Assembly (NCBI RefSeq): GCF_001194135.2
Contig: NC_068996.1
Coordinates: 48,750,771-48,794,719, forward strand
From: Octopus bimaculoides
Taxonomy: Eukaryota
Direction of reading: 5' to 3'
Length of the DNA: 43,949 nt
The notes beneath the pieces were generated by a model. It had not been told where the DNA came from, did not search any database, and saw only the letters and a list, made by a program, of their open reading frames with translations. Below are positions 652-39,589 of this stretch, piece after piece. Each line of letters starts with the position of its first letter. The stretch's first letter is position 1. A program made the position numbers and the translations under genes.

Positions 652-782
652 AAATTAATAGAAATCCAGAGAACAGAGATTTACATATCCTGGTTTTATT
701 ATACAGTTAATCACAAGATGTGATTAACTGTATAATAAAACCAGGATATATAAATCTCTTTTCTCCGGATTTTTATTAATTT
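652..782. repeat. Near-perfect palindrome, 64-bp arms with 3-nt loop
   Basis: 652-715 is the reverse complement of 719-782 with 4 mismatches; loop aga. Confidence 0.95.
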
Positions 783-1084
783 TTTTATTTCTTCTCTGCC
801 GACATTATACAGTCTCTATAAAGACATTTGGATTTACCAAAGTGAAGATTTACCAAGTATCGTGAAATCAACTAACTGGTGTTCAAATACATTCACTGAG
901 CCAGCATTGTTAGCCGATAAAATCAAGCATGGTACCCACTAGGGTTATATACCCCACTTAACCAATTTTGGAAATTTACCTTTATATATATATATATATA
1001 TATGTAAATACATGTGTGTGTGCGTGTGCGTGCGCATGTGTGTGTATGTGTGCGTAAGTGTGTGCGCGCATATGTGTGTATGTG

Positions 1085-1290
1085 TGTGTGTGTTTGTGCG
1101 TGTGTGTATCTGTGCTTGTCCCCCCACCACTACTTGACAACTGGTGTTGTTGTGTTTATATCCCCATCGCCTAGCGGTTCAGCAAAGAGTCTGATAAAAT
1201 AAACGCCAGGCTTAAAGTTCTGGACTCAGCTCTCCAAGGTGGTGCCCCAGCATGATCGGAATCTGATAACTGAAATGAACAAGATATATT
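1085..1290 (+). mobile_element. SINE family A, 3' half preceded by (TG)n
   Basis: cttgacaactggtgttg...ggtggtgccccagcatg...actgaaa block shared with other copies. Confidence 0.75.
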
Positions 1291-1822
1291 AGATACAATA
1301 CATCCTGGACCACAGTAATGCAAAGTGTCTGCTGCTATTTTCTAGGTGAGATTCGTAGGGAGATTTCACTGATATTTCCACCAGCTTGTGTGACTTTGTA
1401 GAAGCAGAGCTGACCTTATTTGCTTGTAGAAAAATGGACTTAGTATGGATGGTGTGAAAGAAGGAGAGAAGAAATAAAATGTGATACAAAGATTAATGTT
1501 CTAGAATCTAAGCAAGACATTTTGAATATGCTAGTAAGATTTCTATGTGTCTTATTTCTGTCCAGTCCATTAAATGCAATTTGTACTTTACCTGTCAAAA
1601 GACATACCTAGATAAATAAAAATAGTATAGAAAAAGGTTTATGAGGGAGATTTTGTTGCATTTTCTAGTAGATAGAGAGATTATATAGAAAATACCACAC
1701 AGGGTCACATAAATGCAGGAATGAAATTTGCCTAGTGGGGTATAAACTCAGATCTAAAATTTATTACAGACAAGATTGATTTTTTTTTCAATCTCAATTT
1801 CAAAATAAATACAGTTATATTA

Positions 1823-2240
1823 ATCATCATCATCATCATCATCATCATCGTTTAACGTCCGCTTTCCATGCTAGCATGGGTTGGACGGTTTGACTGAGGA
1901 CTGGTGAACCAGATGGCTACACCAGCCTCCAATCTGATTTGGCAGAGTTTCTACAGCTGGATGCCCTTCCTAACACCAACCACTCAGAGAATGTAGTGGG
2001 TGCTTTTATGTGCCACCGGTACGAAGGCCGGTCAGGAGGTACTGGCAATGGCCACGCTCAAAATGGTGTATTTTACGTGCCACCTGCACAGGAGCCAGTC
2101 CAGCGGTACTGGCAATAGTCTCGCTCAAATGTCCTTTCACGTGCCACCGGTACAAGTGCCAGGAAGGCGATGTTGCTAACGATCACGCTCAAATGGTGTT
2201 ATTTACGTGCCACCAGCATGGAAGCCAGACAGCTGCTCTG
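1823..2240 (-). mobile_element. 5'-truncated RTE LINE 3' end with (GAT)n tail
   Basis: (cat)n-cgtttaacgtccgctttccatg signature shared with eight other loci; the copy at 34575-34980 joins this sequence to an RTE ORF2 C-terminus. Confidence 0.85.
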
Positions 2241-2924
2241 GCAACGATCACGCTGTATGTATGAATCAAATGCATGAATCAAATCATAATAATCCAAAAA
2301 TGGTAAAGTGATGTTTCAAATCAGTCCAAAAAAATTTCAGCTCTTGTTTGTTTTGTCAATGAAGTTTCTTCGATTGTGCCACCACCGTCCACCTTCTCTG
2401 CACCAAAAATTTTAGTGGATGCATGTTGCCAAACTAGTGCTGAGTATGCTAGAATCTGGTAATTACAAGTAAGAATGAGTATTGCTGAAGAGACCCAATA
2501 AAGCTGAAATATGCCCTGCATGTCACTGCACTTACCAAGATTAAACTCATCTAAACCACACATCCACAATCTGCTTTTAATTAGGATTTTAGGGTTGTCT
2601 CCCTTGCCTTTCTTTACAACTACTGTTTATTCTATTCACACACAAAGGGTGTAATTTTTATTGATCACAACCTTTACATATTCCTATTCACTTTCACACT
2701 CCTACTTAATAAATTATTCTTTTCTCTACAACACAATTGAATCTACTTTTATCATTATTCAGTGAACACTCTACCTCTTACTACCTCTTCCTTCTTCTTT
2801 TCTTTTTAATCATTCGCTTTTTTTTTAACCATAGTTTTATGAATTATTTTTTTTGGTTAGTTTTTTTTATTGCTCTGCTTGTTTTTTTTATATCTACCTT
2901 GTTATCTCATAATTTTCATTCACA

Positions 2925-3113
2925 TACATGCATACACACACACACACATACACGCACAATATGCACATACATACATACATACATACATACATACATACAT
3001 ACATATATATATATATATATATATATATATATATATATATATATATATATATATATATATATATATATATATATATACACACACACACACACACACACAT
3101 GTACATACACACA
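2925..3113. repeat. Compound (CA)n/(TACA)n/(TA)n microsatellite
   Basis: Directly visible; source of the HT/YI/CV artefact ORFs. Confidence 0.97.
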
Positions 3114-3118
3114 CCAGA

Positions 3119-3179
3119 AAGTTATCATTGGTTTCATATCTATTATTGCTCTTAGAAATAGAGGCACTTCATCAGACTT
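3119..3179 (-). ncRNA. Hammerhead-ribozyme-like motif (type I, minimal), Penelope-associated
   Basis: Minus strand: aagt-CTGATGA-[33 nt containing tctatt/aataga stem]-GAAA-ccaatgat-a-actt; 4-bp stem I aagt/actt; about 190 bp downstream of the Penelope GIY-YIG end. Confidence 0.55.
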
Positions 3180-37357: not shown

Positions 37358-37419
37358 ATAGCTACGTAATATGTTCATCTCTGTTCTAAAAAAGGAAGCA
37401 AAAACATATTTTTTCAGAT

Positions 37420-38260
37420 AATCCATCTATCTTCACCCACAATTTTTTGGAGACTACTGATCGTATCCAATCTCTCGGTCTACTCCCAGGTCTCCTGCTT
37501 GTTAAAAAATCCATCTTAGAACATAGATGAATATGTTACGTAGCTATACAGCTTTTAGCAAGATGTGGCTGTGTGGTAAGAAATTTGCTTCCCAACCACA
37601 TGGCTTCAGTTTCAGTCCCATTGTGTGTAACCTTGGGACAAGTGTTTTCTACTATAGCCTTGGACTGACCAAAGTCTTGTTAAAAAATCCATCTTGTAAC
37701 TCATTTTTGTGACATTCTAATCACACATGTTCGTAGTACTGGAGCTGTGACCTCTCACTGCAGAGCTGTAATGGTTCAACCTGGAGAAATTCCTTGATCT
37801 CCAAGCTGTACATCATGTAGAGAAACACTACTCTGGAGATCCTTTGGAAGAACGCTCTCTCAGCTGCTTATATTTGTGATCATACTTTTTCAGTCATTAC
37901 CCATCATTCATGGTCATAGATGAGGATAAACATGGAAACCAAATTGAAGGTATCAAATTTGGATTTTTTTCACCAATTTCTTCTCTTCTGAAGATTGATT
38001 ATAGGATCTGGCCTATTACAGTGTCATCACCTGCAATTCTAGCATCCAATTCGGCCTTCTGCCTTCTCTTCATTTGTGAATGCAACACCAAGACACTTAA
38101 ACTTCTCCACTTGTATCAATGATGTTCCACTAACATAAACACTGGACTGGGAAAGCTTTTTTAAAAGGACCAATGTCTTAGTTTTCGCAACAATAATTCT
38201 CATTCCTTTCTTGCAGCATTCAGCAGTAAGCCCATTCAGTGCATGCAGATAATGTAAATG
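37420..38260 (-). mobile_element. RTE-clade LINE ORF2 C-terminal fragment
   Basis: MRIIVAKTKTLV...QVEKFKCLGVAFT, WVMTEK, QVEPLQL..ERSQLQYY and SRRPGSRPRDW. Confidence 0.85.
37516..37680 (+). repeat. Inverted local copy of 37242-37389, flanked by a 20-bp direct repeat
   Basis: 143/148 identity plus a 17-nt indel; cttgttaaaaaatccatctt at 37498-37517 and 37676-37695. Confidence 0.93.
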
Positions 38261-38481
38261 AAAATTTATTAAATCTTGTTTGTGCATGTGTGTGTGTGTG
38301 TGTGTGTGTGTGTGTGTGTGTGTGTCCATTCTGTCTTTAATAACATAGCAAGCATTCTTGTTAAAAAGGAAGGGATTTTCTGGCCTCTATGTTTATAATA
38401 ATTGTAGGTATTCTTTACATTTCGTTTGGTCTAATTCATGGTAAAAATGAAATTTTCATCTCATGTGAATTTCCACTGCAG

Positions 38482-38622
38482 GCTAATGAAATAAAACGCC
38501 AACATGGAGCTGTTACCATTCTTGTGAACAATGCTGGAATATTGGCCCCGGGGAATTTTCTGGAAGTTGAAGATGAGAAAATTGAGCAGATTTTCAAAGT
38601 TAACATGTTGGCTCATTTTAGG
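38482..38622 (+). CDS. SDR16C-family dehydrogenase/reductase, coding exon 3
   Basis: Acceptor ttccactgcag; ANEIKRQHGAVTILVNNAGILAPGNFLEVEDEKIEQIFKVNMLAHFR (NNAG motif); donor gtaagt at 38623. Confidence 0.93.
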
Positions 38623-38829
38623 GTAAGTTTTGTTTTTTACTTTGACTATTTTCTATCAGTGGACAGTGACCTTGCTAGGTACCATCCTACAGTGACCTAG
38701 CTAGAGTACCATTCTACCATATTTTATGTTTTACTTTTATTAATTGGGCTAAAACACAATTTCTTTTGAATAGTAAAACAAGGGTGCTATCTAATTATTT
38801 AATACAATTGCATGTTGCTGATGTCATAA

Positions 38830-39100
38830 GAATCATGAGGTAGTGAGTTCAATTCTCAGACTGGGCTGTGTGTTGTGTTCTTGAGCAAGACACTTTATTT
38901 CATGTTGCTCCACTCCACTCATCTGTAGAAATGAGATGCAATGTCACTAGTGCCAAGCTGTATCAGCCTTTGCCTTTCCCTTGGATAACATTGATGGCAT
39001 AGAGAGGGGAGGCTGATGTATGTGCATGCGACTGCTGGTCTTCCATGAAAAACCTTGCCCGGACTTGGGCCTCAGATGGGAACTTTCTAGGTGCAATTTC
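38830..39100 (+). mobile_element. CORE-like tRNA SINE (family D)
   Basis: ttcttgagcaagacactttatttcatgttgctcc...ctgtagaaatgag. Confidence 0.78.
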
Positions 39101-39309
39101 TTTCTTCTCACAGTAGTGAGAAGAAAGAAATTGGTTTACGTGAAGTGGCTGGAAAGTTTTGCACAGCCATTTTTGGTGGTAATCTTGCATCTTCCCTTCT
39201 CATTCAGAACCCCTACTACAAAATATAATGATTCAGTATGGAAATGACTCCAACAGGGCGAATGTTTCATCAGCAAAAAATACAATGTGAAACATCTACT
39301 TATAAGTCA

Positions 39310-39589
39310 GTGTAATTGTGTGTTTGATGTATATGTGATGCATGTGCGTGTGCTTGTGTGTGTAAACATGGACAAAGCACAGGCAAAGCCAAGTAGTTAA
39401 GAACTTCATTTTACGATCATGAAATCTTGGGTTCAAATCCACTGTGTGATAACTATGGCAAGTACCTTTTATCATAAACTTAACTACTTGACTTTGCCTG
39501 TGCTTTGTCCATGATTACACACACAAGCAGACGCACATATATCAGACATACACACATGCATCACATATACATCAAACCCACAATTGCAC
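39310..39589. repeat. Inverted repeat, 92-bp arms with 77-bp spacer
   Basis: 39310-39401 versus 39479-39589: 87/92 plus a 19-nt indel. Confidence 0.92.

Follow-up and report, generated by a model that had tools for sequence, protein, structure and literature searches.

A mixed set of inverted repeats around a dehydrogenase gene in Octopus bimaculoides, with a nested transposon insertion and probable fold-back duplications

The window analysed here is a 43,949-nucleotide stretch of the Octopus bimaculoides genome (NC_068996.1, positions 48,750,771 to 48,794,719 of the forward strand). It contains a short-chain dehydrogenase/reductase (SDR) gene on the + strand at 11495–38627, with three exons (exon 1, 11495–11719; exon 2, ~30204–30320; exon 3, 38482–38627) and AG/GT splice sites, the protein of which had no octopus match in the protein collection. 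Within and around this gene lie six inverted repeats, A to F, five of them local and one of longer range, as originally predicted; all were recovered at their predicted coordinates in a BLAST comparison of the window with its own minus strand (E-values of 1e-18 to 1e-54) and all far exceed chance. The claim that four of the six lie in SDR introns is borne out, the gene being on the + strand with canonical splice sites; in the placement of individual elements, intron 1 holds B and C, intron 2 holds D, and E lies past exon 3. The RNA folds of the hairpins have z-scores of −17 to −33 against dinucleotide shuffles, their arms have diverged by ~2–9%, and one-arm indels occur in the outer element of B (107 bp), C (43 bp), D (17 bp), E (19 bp) and F (13 bp). 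What emerges is that the six are a mixture of several unrelated kinds of feature and not a single phenomenon.

Comparisons beyond the window drew on ~190 kb of other loci, ~148 kb of it octopus (137 kb non-N), such that octopus DNA totals ~180 kb with the window and ~137 kb outside it; to be noticed in a sample of this size, a MITE family would need at least a few tens of thousands of copies. Across the window and these ~190 kb, the proposal that no one transposon family accounts for the set is upheld. Two hairpins from other octopus loci do have homologs in the window (L004 22086–22262 with window 22013–22110, and L002 24741–24856 with window 36217–36316), which makes families as yet unseen plausible. 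In the window, the homolog of the L004 palindrome has a single arm, reading X-Y rather than X-loop-rcX-Y, so the palindromic state is not common to that family.

Element B (16656–17100) consists of a palindrome at 16681–16791 (111 nt, 93.7%) within an outer pair, 16656–16684 and 17072–17100. The outer element, unstranded at 16657–17100, is ~340 bp long once the insert and one TTAA are subtracted. A target duplication of TA is possible for it. The inner element (16685–16787, 103 bp, unstranded) is itself palindromic, with arms matching at 48/51 positions and a fold z-score of −17.4; it sits in the left repeat of the outer element and is bordered by TTAA at 16681–16684 and 16788–16791. Removal of 16685–16787 together with one TTAA gives back a colinear 43-bp terminal inverted repeat (39/43), in which the left side (16657–16684 plus 16792–16806) aligns with the right (17058–17100); neither arm of the palindrome, then, is native to this site. 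The right repeat, as the paralogous arm, serves as the empty site and reads CAACTTAACCCATT without the insert. B is thus a transposon insertion inside an older inverted-repeat element and not a fold-back, and the single fold-back originally described conflates two nested features. In other words, a 103-bp palindromic cut-and-paste element entered one terminal repeat of the older ~340-bp element, duplicating TTAA; a target duplication of TA, or of TTA/TAA with A/T element ends, is a possible alternative.

Termini of the form CCC...GGG are typical of the piggyBac superfamily. The ends of the inner element are TGTGACAG...CTGTTACA (TGTGAC...) and not of this form, and it is accordingly classed no further than as a TTAA-duplicating cut-and-paste element, with no superfamily assigned. 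It shares with TTAA-specific piggyBac MITEs the TTAA duplication, an inverted repeat across the whole element, a small size (103 bp) and the lack of coding capacity, and differs from them in its TGTGAC... termini; piggyBac, Tc1-mariner and MITE families are reported to have been recently active in Octopus vulgaris (PMC13282606). No second copy was found in the window or the ~190 kb of other loci (~148 kb octopus), a small sample, and a metagenome scan gave 0 matches, as did its SINE positive control.

Element A is an unstranded palindrome at 652–782 (131 nt) with 64-nt arms of 91.6% identity around a 3-nt AGA loop; its RNA fold is −79.4 kcal/mol (z = −19.5). TTAA occurs 3 nt inside both ends, where, being self-complementary, it forms part of the palindrome, and the element begins ~16 bp past the 3′ tail of a +-strand SINE. 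It is a palindromic MITE flanked by TTAA or else a fold-back with no spacer, and may be of the same kind as the TTAA insertion in B. No further copy was seen in the window or the ~190 kb of other loci (~148 kb octopus, 137 kb non-N), a sample too small to exclude a family.

Element C (26345–26875) pairs 26685–26740 with 26820–26875 (94.6%) and 26575–26644 with 26801–26870 (92.9%). The original arm is a 5′-truncated RTE on the − strand at 26345–26762, with its (ATG)n tail at ~26345, a 5′ end at ~26762 that falls within the final ~50 nt of the ORF, and a paired part at 26685–26755. The copied arm (26762–26875, +) follows a 7-nt loop and is RTE sense sequence without the RTE 3′ end, colinear with the ORF end and 3′UTR of the reference, an RTE copy at locus L002. 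The arms are 68/72 identical, the left being 43 bp shorter than the right through a deletion between TGC repeats, and the junction overlap is 1 nt. The right arm begins at the same RTE position at which the minus-strand copy ends, and C is accordingly a true palindrome. Where an RTE end had been proposed as the template, the arms in fact correspond to the last ~45 nt of the RTE ORF and the 3′UTR tandem unit, not to a terminus. C resembles LINE twin priming in that a 5′-truncated LINE carries an inverted segment at its 5′ end; twin-primed segments are consecutive in the LINE, whereas the inverted part of C duplicates the adjacent part. A twin-priming inversion was rejected for C, both arms sharing the RTE start position and overlapping by 71–114 nt. 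An RTE with an intact 346-aa endonuclease ORF is also present in the window.

Element D (36975–37695) pairs 37242–37359 with 37563–37680 over 118 nt at 98.3%, extended by 37360–37389 and 37516–37545, and its fold is −286 kcal/mol (z = −33). The source (36975–37389, −; paired part 37242–37389) is a full-length tRNA-derived SINE that runs from its tail at 36975 to the end of its head at 37359, together with a unique 5′ flank of 30 bp. About ten other copies set the SINE 5′ boundary at 37356–37360, and both arms pass it by 30 bp; this flank had no other copy in the window or the ~190 kb of other loci sampled. The copied arm (37516–37680, +) is the reverse complement of 37242–37389 with 17 extra bp (37546–37562) at the SINE/flank boundary. 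It contains only the first 118 nt of the SINE and is thus 3′-truncated, an outcome that target-primed reverse transcription does not yield. Arm-to-arm identity is 98.3%, against 75–82% to other SINE copies. A 20-bp direct repeat, cttgttaaaaaatccatctt, brackets the copied arm at 37498–37517 and 37676–37695, the junction overlaps are tt and cttgt, and the order is 3-2-4-1, the return point lying 20 bp upstream of the departure point. The copy of the SINE head and 30-bp flank would have been set down 126 bp downstream, where 20 bp of the acceptor site became duplicated; this points to a staggered break, or else to a return upstream of the point of departure.

Element E (39310–39589) pairs 39328–39401 with 39479–39552 (90.5%) and 39310–39346 with 39553–39589 (94.6%). 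Its source (39310–39478, +; paired 39310–39401, loop 39402–39478) comprises ~76 bp of TG-rich 5′ flank, of which no other copy occurs in the window or the small sample of ~190 kb of other loci, followed by a diverged SINE head. From an alignment to six SINE heads, this head runs from ~39386 to SINE position ~92, the loop and the last ~15 nt of the left arm aligning to it. The copied arm (39479–39589, +) is the reverse complement of 39310–39401, covering the flank and the opening ~15 nt of the head, and holds a low-complexity insertion of 19 nt. Its first letters are CTT, also the next SINE base triplet, giving a ctt overlap, and the remainder of the SINE is absent. The switch would thus have occurred inside the SINE head, with the copy taking the place of the remaining SINE. 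The copied arm is CA-rich and adjoins a 600-bp CA-rich array, for which reason the opposite polarity of copying is possible at E.

Pair F is the longer-range case, with unstranded arms at 1552–1660 and 4031–4152, 2.37 kb apart. The arm identity of ~92–97% originally given for the set applies to F only over aligned bases (105/109, 96%); with 13 gap columns, a 13-nt AT-rich indel, counted it is 86%. A target duplication was looked for beside the arms and none was seen, and no other copies were found in the window or the small sample of ~190 kb of other loci (~148 kb octopus). F probably belongs in one class with C, D and E, as an event of longer range. An RTE 3′ fragment (1816–2260) sits between its arms.

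Elements C, D and E have a common anatomy, in which the left arms are colinear with an RTE copy, a full-length SINE and a SINE head, respectively, and the right arms are 3′-truncated reverse-complement copies nearby. Since the arms are made of SINE head plus unique flank, or share the same internal RTE start, they are neither TE termini nor independent insertions. Independent inverted TE pairs of the IRAlu kind were considered for all three and rejected: the right arms are without 3′ ends, and the arms of D are 98% identical as against 75–82%. In the explanation that we favour, which takes the six as a mixture of kinds and which we hold to be fairly probable as a whole, C, D and E are true local inverted duplications, beyond TE mobility. 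A free 3′ end on the + strand would have folded over and annealed, by 1–5 nt of homology, to its own strand or to that of the sister, after which 92–165 nt would have been copied in reverse complement and rejoined; at C the returning 3′ end would be the 5′-truncation point of the RTE copy, leaving the 7-nt loop. The direction of copying is suggested by colinearity with the TE and not by an outgroup. Taken alone, the 1–5 nt overlaps are weak evidence. At the rate implied by PMC13282606, arm divergence of ~2–9% would correspond to separate events over ~2–13 million years. The template-switch-like origin originally proposed thus fits C, D and E, with arms that are not TE termini, 3′-truncated copies and 1–5 nt overlaps, but fails for B with its TTAA insertion; as for the polymerase theta-like enzyme named alongside it, sequence cannot reveal that or any other enzyme.

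Template switching and snap-back synthesis are both mechanisms of an already known kind. Insertions templated during end joining are usually tens of bases long, as against the 92–165 nt copied here. Otherwise, snap-back in microhomology-mediated end joining (PMC7999016, PMC10766183) has in common with these elements a 3′ end priming its own strand through 1–5 nt of homology and an inverted duplication next to a break, with E losing the break-distal sequence. Replication template switching makes reverse-complement repeats de novo (PMC5453318, PMC10710096), and its four-point model (Loytynoja & Goldman 2017, PMC5453318; Monttinen et al. 2023, PMC10710096) shares with the present cases short overlaps at the switch points and needs no pre-existing repeat; the published events are often intronic, as here, and C and E fit the repeat-creating event type. 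The differences are in length, the copies here being 92–165 nt with loops of 7–126 nt while published events are short, with a filter for fragments >14 bp, and in the return of D 20 bp before its departure, a class not observed in primate data (PMC5453318). All three fold-backs (3/3) lie at retroelement 5′ ends, which may tie the process to retrotransposition and not to general repair.

In this regard, C, D and E could instead be by-products of retrotransposition, a reading we regard as unlikely. The 3′ end of first-strand cDNA, or the one exposed at a LINE endonuclease nick, would fold over and prime further synthesis by reverse transcriptase, producing inverted duplications at retroelement 5′ ends and, at D, a target-site duplication. 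This route would account for the axis of C lying exactly at the RTE 5′-truncation point, with the copied arm continuing the would-be cDNA strand, and for the 20-bp direct repeat of D, LINE-like in length, with a copy that starts at the source A-run; a retroelement 5′ end in every resolved case and an RTE with an intact endonuclease ORF are also in its favour. Against this, the copies of D and E take in genomic flank, meaning that the SINE must have been in place beforehand; the nick site of D is unlike a known endonuclease target; a direct reading finds no A-to-G differences between the arms of D that would hint at an RNA intermediate; and, with roughly one quarter of the genome consisting of SINEs and LINEs, 3/3 could be coincidence. 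Somewhat more doubtful still is that all six belong to multi-copy MITE or foldback families, or are their terminal repeats, too rare for the sample to reveal. In favour of this, the inner element of B has a TTAA duplication and an empty site, A has TTAA just inside both ends, hairpins of L004 and L002 have window homologs, and active DNA transposons and MITEs are reported in octopus. Yet C, D and E are not TE termini: the arms of D and E straddle the SINE 5′ boundary and those of C are internal RTE, requiring exact capture of a neighbouring TE; the left arm of D is integral to a full-length SINE; the L004 homolog is one-armed; and A, B and F have no second copy in the window or the ~190 kb of other loci (~148 kb octopus).

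It is very improbable that the hairpins were created by assembling short reads into a gap-rich sequence. The window has nine N runs; in all six cases the arms and the DNA separating them are free of these, and the gap closest to a hairpin (36576–36794) is ~450 bp from D. Artefacts do exist, in that the gap at 8844–9055 is bordered on both sides by an identical 53-bp word (8791–8843 = 9056–9108), the letters around it being redundant and not continuous, and a like case occurs in L002 (24628–25124 = 25363–25859); the gaps at 13359–13439 and 18661–18784 sit within low-complexity or tandem arrays. These known artefacts are direct, 100% identical and gap-adjacent, whereas the hairpins are inverted, 2–9% diverged, indel-bearing and at least 450 bp from gaps, and comparable palindromes occur in the gap-free long-read assemblies of O. 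vulgaris and O. sinensis (L003–L005). Least credible of all is a selected system in which intronic dsRNA recruits ADAR and tunes SDR editing or expression. Four hairpins in SDR introns with predicted stems of 50–150 bp, in an animal whose hyper-editing signal exceeds that of every other species in the survey (PMC5625713), speak for it; but their arms decay at differing rates with no conserved sequence or position, ordinary inverted RTE pairs share these introns, and the density is the genome average. Most likely, the hairpins are neutral by-products.

The intronic hairpins fold into long, near-perfect predicted stems of 50–150 bp and, if transcribed in the SDR introns, would form long dsRNA of the kind that ADAR hyper-edits. 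Known ADAR substrates include inverted SINE/Alu pairs and palindromic Harbinger repeats (Porath et al. 2017, PMC5625713), which likewise are intronic, near-perfect local reverse-complement pairs; C, D and E differ in arising from local duplication of one copy and its flank, not from two insertions or a palindromic consensus. The Porath-type score of the window is 0.0072, or 0.0053 with simple repeats excluded, and the genome-wide score of O. bimaculoides, 4.4e-3, is the highest among 19 animals (PMC5625713). The density of near-perfect local inverted repeats is hence close to the published octopus value, and the window is typical octopus; the suggestion of a hairpin 'system' finds no sign here. 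The richness of the octopus genome in hairpin DNA is already published, and the six agree with it. An ordinary inverted TE pair, of RTE copies at 26348–26533 and 28937–29122 with 86% identity, lies elsewhere in the window.

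All six inverted repeats of the original prediction are confirmed, each being recovered at its coordinates when the window is compared by BLAST with its own minus strand. They comprise five local cases, termed A (652-782), B (16656-17100), C (26685-26875), D (37242-37680) and E (39310-39589), together with a longer-range inverted pair, F (1552-1660 and 4031-4152). The E-values of the six (1e-18 to 1e-54), along with RNA folds of the hairpins at z = -17 to -33 against dinucleotide shuffles, exclude chance. None of the nine N runs in the window lies within, between or adjoining the arms, the closest being 450 bp from D. 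The predicted arm identity of about 92-97% needs qualification for F, for which it is 96% over aligned bases but 86% when gaps are counted. Likewise, the reading of the set as fold-back duplications is correct for three or four of the six, which are local fold-back duplications, but at least one other is a transposon.

In D, the minus strand carries a full-length tRNA-derived SINE whose tail is at 36975 and whose head ends at 37359, a 5' boundary fixed by some ten other SINE copies which begin at 37356-37360. The left arm (37242-37389) consists of the first 118 nt of this SINE plus 30 bp of flank that occurs nowhere else in the window or in about 190 kb of additional loci. Its reverse complement forms the right arm (37516-37680), which has 17 additional bp where SINE and flank meet. 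In their SINE parts the arms are 98.3% identical to each other, as against 75-82% to other copies, and there are no A-to-G differences between the arms. With 5' flank included and the 3' part missing, the right arm cannot have arisen by retroposition of a SINE transcript. A perfect 20-bp direct repeat, cttgttaaaaaatccatctt, brackets the right arm (37498-37517 and 37676-37695) and shares tt with the copy at one junction and cttgt at the other.

C is centred on the truncation point of an RTE, a LINE-type retroelement, whose orientation proves to be the reverse of what it seems at first. In the reference copy of this element, from another O. bimaculoides locus (L002), the ORF ends in ...DLWKYAVLEKTRQAK and a stop; a 3'UTR containing tandem units comes next, then an (ATG)n tail. 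The source fragment of C, on the minus strand, extends between its tail (about 26345) and about 26762, a point within the final ~50 nt of the ORF. A 7-nt loop separates it from the copied arm (26762-26875, 114 nt, plus strand, RTE sense), which starts at the same RTE position as that at which the minus-strand fragment ends. The arms are identical at 68 of 72 positions, and the left one lacks 43 bp, deleted between two TGC repeats. Since both arms begin at one LINE coordinate, the palindrome sits at the 5'-truncation point and is not a twin-priming inversion; nor is the right arm, which has no RTE 3' end, a separate insertion. The 7-mer ACCTTTG belongs to the RTE sequence and was rejected as a target duplication.

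In E, six SINE heads can be aligned with the loop together with the final ~15 nt of the left arm, and the SINE stops at about its position 92. Beyond this stop the sequence turns into a reverse-complement copy of the opening ~15 nt of the head and of ~76 nt of upstream flank; this copied arm begins with CTT, the triplet that would also come next in the SINE consensus. The arms match at 87 of 92 positions, the right one carrying a low-complexity insertion of 19 nt. The remainder of the SINE is absent, as is expected where a copy has replaced whatever lay distal to a break. Because the right arm is rich in CA and adjoins a 600-bp CA-rich array, the polarity of E is less secure than that of C and D.

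The simplest account of C, D and E is one in which the 3' end of the plus strand would prime on its own or the sister strand through 1-5 nt of homology, be extended by 92-165 nt and then be rejoined. The anatomy and the junctions are read directly from the DNA; the direction of synthesis, the polymerase and the trigger are what we infer. Snap-back synthesis at breaks is an established process, and template switching during replication makes hairpins de novo (PMC5453318, PMC10710096). In the four-point scheme of template switching, the order of D is 3-2-4-1, with the return point before the departure point, a class not observed in primates (PMC5453318); a staggered break filled after snap-back is therefore at least as likely for D as a replication switch. 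A link to retrotransposition itself would suit C well, and the fold-back axes, all three of which (C, D and E) fall at retroelement 5' ends, hint at it; but the copies in D and E include flanking DNA, meaning that their SINEs were already in place. In each of the three, the copied arm is the right-hand one, extended on the plus strand, which is the coding strand of the short-chain dehydrogenase/reductase (SDR) host gene (26762-26875, 37516-37680 and 39479-39589). Three out of three is not significant, and the direction of replication or of transcription could be the cause. Arm divergences of about 2-9%, taken with a rate of JC 0.065 for about 18 My (PMC13282606), suggest separate events over roughly 2-13 My, which would make them younger than, or of about the same age as, the 13-33 My split from O. 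vulgaris and O. sinensis.

B had been taken as one inverted duplication; the inverted repeat is present, but it is actually two nested features. The inner one is a 103-bp palindrome (16685-16787) with arms identical at 48 of 51 positions and TTAA on both sides. Removal of this palindrome with one TTAA leaves a left side that is colinear with the reverse complement of 17058-17100 (39/43 over 43 bp), and the junction without the insert reads through as CAACTTAACCCATT. Necessarily, therefore, both inner arms are foreign to the site and a 4-bp target has been duplicated. By its signature the inner palindrome is a cut-and-paste insertion and not a fold-back of local DNA. Its termini, TGTGAC..., differ from the CCC...GGG usual for piggyBac, and so it is not placed in piggyBac or in any superfamily; piggyBac, Tc1-mariner and MITE families are reported to have been recently active in O. 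vulgaris (PMC13282606). The outer element spans about 340 bp with 43-bp terminal repeats and shows no resolved target duplication. An exact-pattern scan of JGI metagenomes with a 23-mer of the inner palindrome gave no match, but a SINE 23-mer used as positive control was equally unmatched, indicating that these metagenomes are without octopus DNA and that the scan says nothing on copy number. A protein search with translated hairpin peptides, which gave zero matches, is similarly uninformative for copy number.

A is a 131-bp palindrome (652-782) with a 3-nt loop and TTAA 3 nt inside each end, and could be either a TTAA-type palindromic MITE, like the inner element of B, or a zero-spacer fold-back. 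The 9-mer attatacag, at 698 and 804, could serve as a flanking repeat and make A a D-like event, but with so many comparisons a match of this kind should arise by chance, and the reading was rejected. For F, the best reading is an inverted duplication over a longer range. A second copy of A, or of either F arm, is absent from the window and from ~190 kb of additional loci, ~148 kb of which is octopus DNA. The interval separating the arms of F contains an RTE fragment and is otherwise free of repeated homologs, and there is no flanking target duplication, such that terminal repeats of a 2.6-kb transposon are unsupported as an explanation.

With regard to density, the hairpin-potential score of Porath et al. 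2017 (PMC5625713) is the share of 50-bp windows that have, within 2 kb, a reverse match 40 bp or more in length and more than 95% identical. It was run here as an ungapped 39/40 scan, gapped HSPs falling below 95%. The window scores 0.0072, or 0.0053 excluding simple repeats. PMC5625713 itself gives a genome-wide value of 4.4e-3 for O. bimaculoides and calls it exceptionally high among 19 species. The window, being near this value, is thus typical of an already hairpin-rich genome. Two RTE-bearing non-octopus control loci score 0, a sample too small to weigh.

When five other octopus loci, together 137 kb of non-N sequence, were scanned with identical thresholds, about eight local inverted repeats emerged, among which are zero-spacer palindromes from the gap-free O. 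vulgaris assembly. Two of the eight or so have homologs in the window. One, in the O. vulgaris locus L004 (22086-22262), is a 177-bp palindrome between (TA)n tracts whose arms are 96% identical to each other. Its window homolog (22013-22110), also between (TA)n tracts, is ~80% identical to those arms, adjoins the gap 21595-21992 and is one-armed, with the arrangement X-Y as against X-loop-rcX-Y; either a fold-back in one paralog or the loss of an arm in the other would give this difference. The second, in L002, has 116-nt arms at 96.6%; the window carries an 88% homolog of its arm that extends over ~240 bp (36217-36455, compared with 24620-25124 of L002), with a gap (36576-36794) ~120 bp downstream, and that inverted-repeat family is therefore multi-copy. 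A second O. vulgaris locus holds a 519-bp inverted repeat (7018-7533 and 7813-8323; 95.8%, 279-bp spacer) with two more copies nearby (8338-8659 and 9907-10389; 94-96%), a cluster of inverted and direct segmental copies far larger than the window cases. In an O. sinensis locus, a 36-nt inverted repeat (5665-5700 and 5826-5861, 89%) lies inside a mariner-like transposase remnant, one arm coding for the conserved segment ...SPDLTSPD.

The overall picture is that the window hairpins are an ordinary result, neutral-looking debris of known mechanisms at the published octopus density, and fold-back duplication of this kind is already known. There is no sign that they form a selected system, and their density equals the octopus norm reported in PMC5625713. 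Among reported species octopus ranks first there, both in hyper-editing signal and in the fraction of loci able to form long, near-perfect local dsRNA; the passages on such structures ascribe them mostly to paired inverted repeats and name no octopus-specific source. In the window, part at least of the dsRNA signal comes from fold-back duplication of single TE copies and their flanks, beside small palindromic transposons. Were the whole genome to behave in this way, the cephalopod supply of ADAR substrates would be governed by a mutational process as well as by TE load. It is improbable, on present indications, that snap-back duplication is unusually active in octopus, possibly tied to LINE/SINE integration intermediates, and that by continually turning retroelement 5' junctions into near-perfect intronic hairpins it is a major source of octopus dsRNA potential and hyper-editing, over chance inverted TE pairs or palindromic TEs.

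The SDR gene lies on the plus strand, with exons at 11495-11719, ~30204-30320 and 38482-38627 and canonical AG/GT sites at all three. These coordinates place B and C in intron 1, D in intron 2 and E downstream of exon 3, in agreement with the prediction that four of the cases lie in SDR introns. Searched against a collection of 5.8 billion proteins, the exons matched no octopus protein, the best match being a Logan contig (36% identity over 85% of the query); the gene may be absent from annotated public octopus gene sets. An RTE-type endonuclease ORF of 346 aa (20197-21237, minus strand), uninterrupted between its ATG and its stop codon, lies in the interval separating the gaps 19962-20095 and 21595-21992. 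The best named relatives are proteins of O. bimaculoides, O. sinensis and O. vulgaris, at only 56-61% over most of the ORF (up to 71-76% in short stretches), and its lineage is therefore not among the annotated octopus proteins found. The search with this ORF led to paralogous octopus loci only; the SINE and RTE fragments of the window match loci from the genomes of these three octopus species at 75-95%. Pfam matched one of eight window ORFs, this same RTE, as a weak endonuclease. The window contains no tRNA genes, and no Rfam family reaches its gathering score anywhere in it; generic, sub-threshold Rfam matches to plant-miRNA hairpins near E were dismissed as a resemblance in structure only.

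Short N runs are frequent in the window, as they are in the O. bimaculoides loci L001 and L002; this resemblance, with the RTE relatives and the SINE and RTE matches, marks the window as cephalopod DNA. The gap at 8844-9055 has an identical 53-bp word on each side (8791-8843 and 9056-9108), and in L002 there are 100% identical direct duplications around gaps, of 497 bp (24628-25124 and 25363-25859) and 200 bp (18984-19183 and 19648-19847). These resemble unmerged contig overlaps, the gap at 8844-9055 probably being a failed contig merge; gaps of this kind are therefore probably spurious, and local distances inflated. The gaps 13359-13439 and 18661-18784 fall within low-complexity or tandem arrays. 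The latter breaks a 93-bp tandem satellite (17912-19076; at least 11 copies, 93-98% identity), which derives from the 3' tail of a tRNA-related SINE (SINE positions ~297-401). Ordinary inverted pairs of RTE 3' ends also occur in the SDR introns (26348-26533 with 28937-29122, 86%; 31449-31588 with 34355-34486, 84%), spaced by 2.4-2.8 kb, from which dsRNA is expected in the pre-mRNA without any fold-back event.
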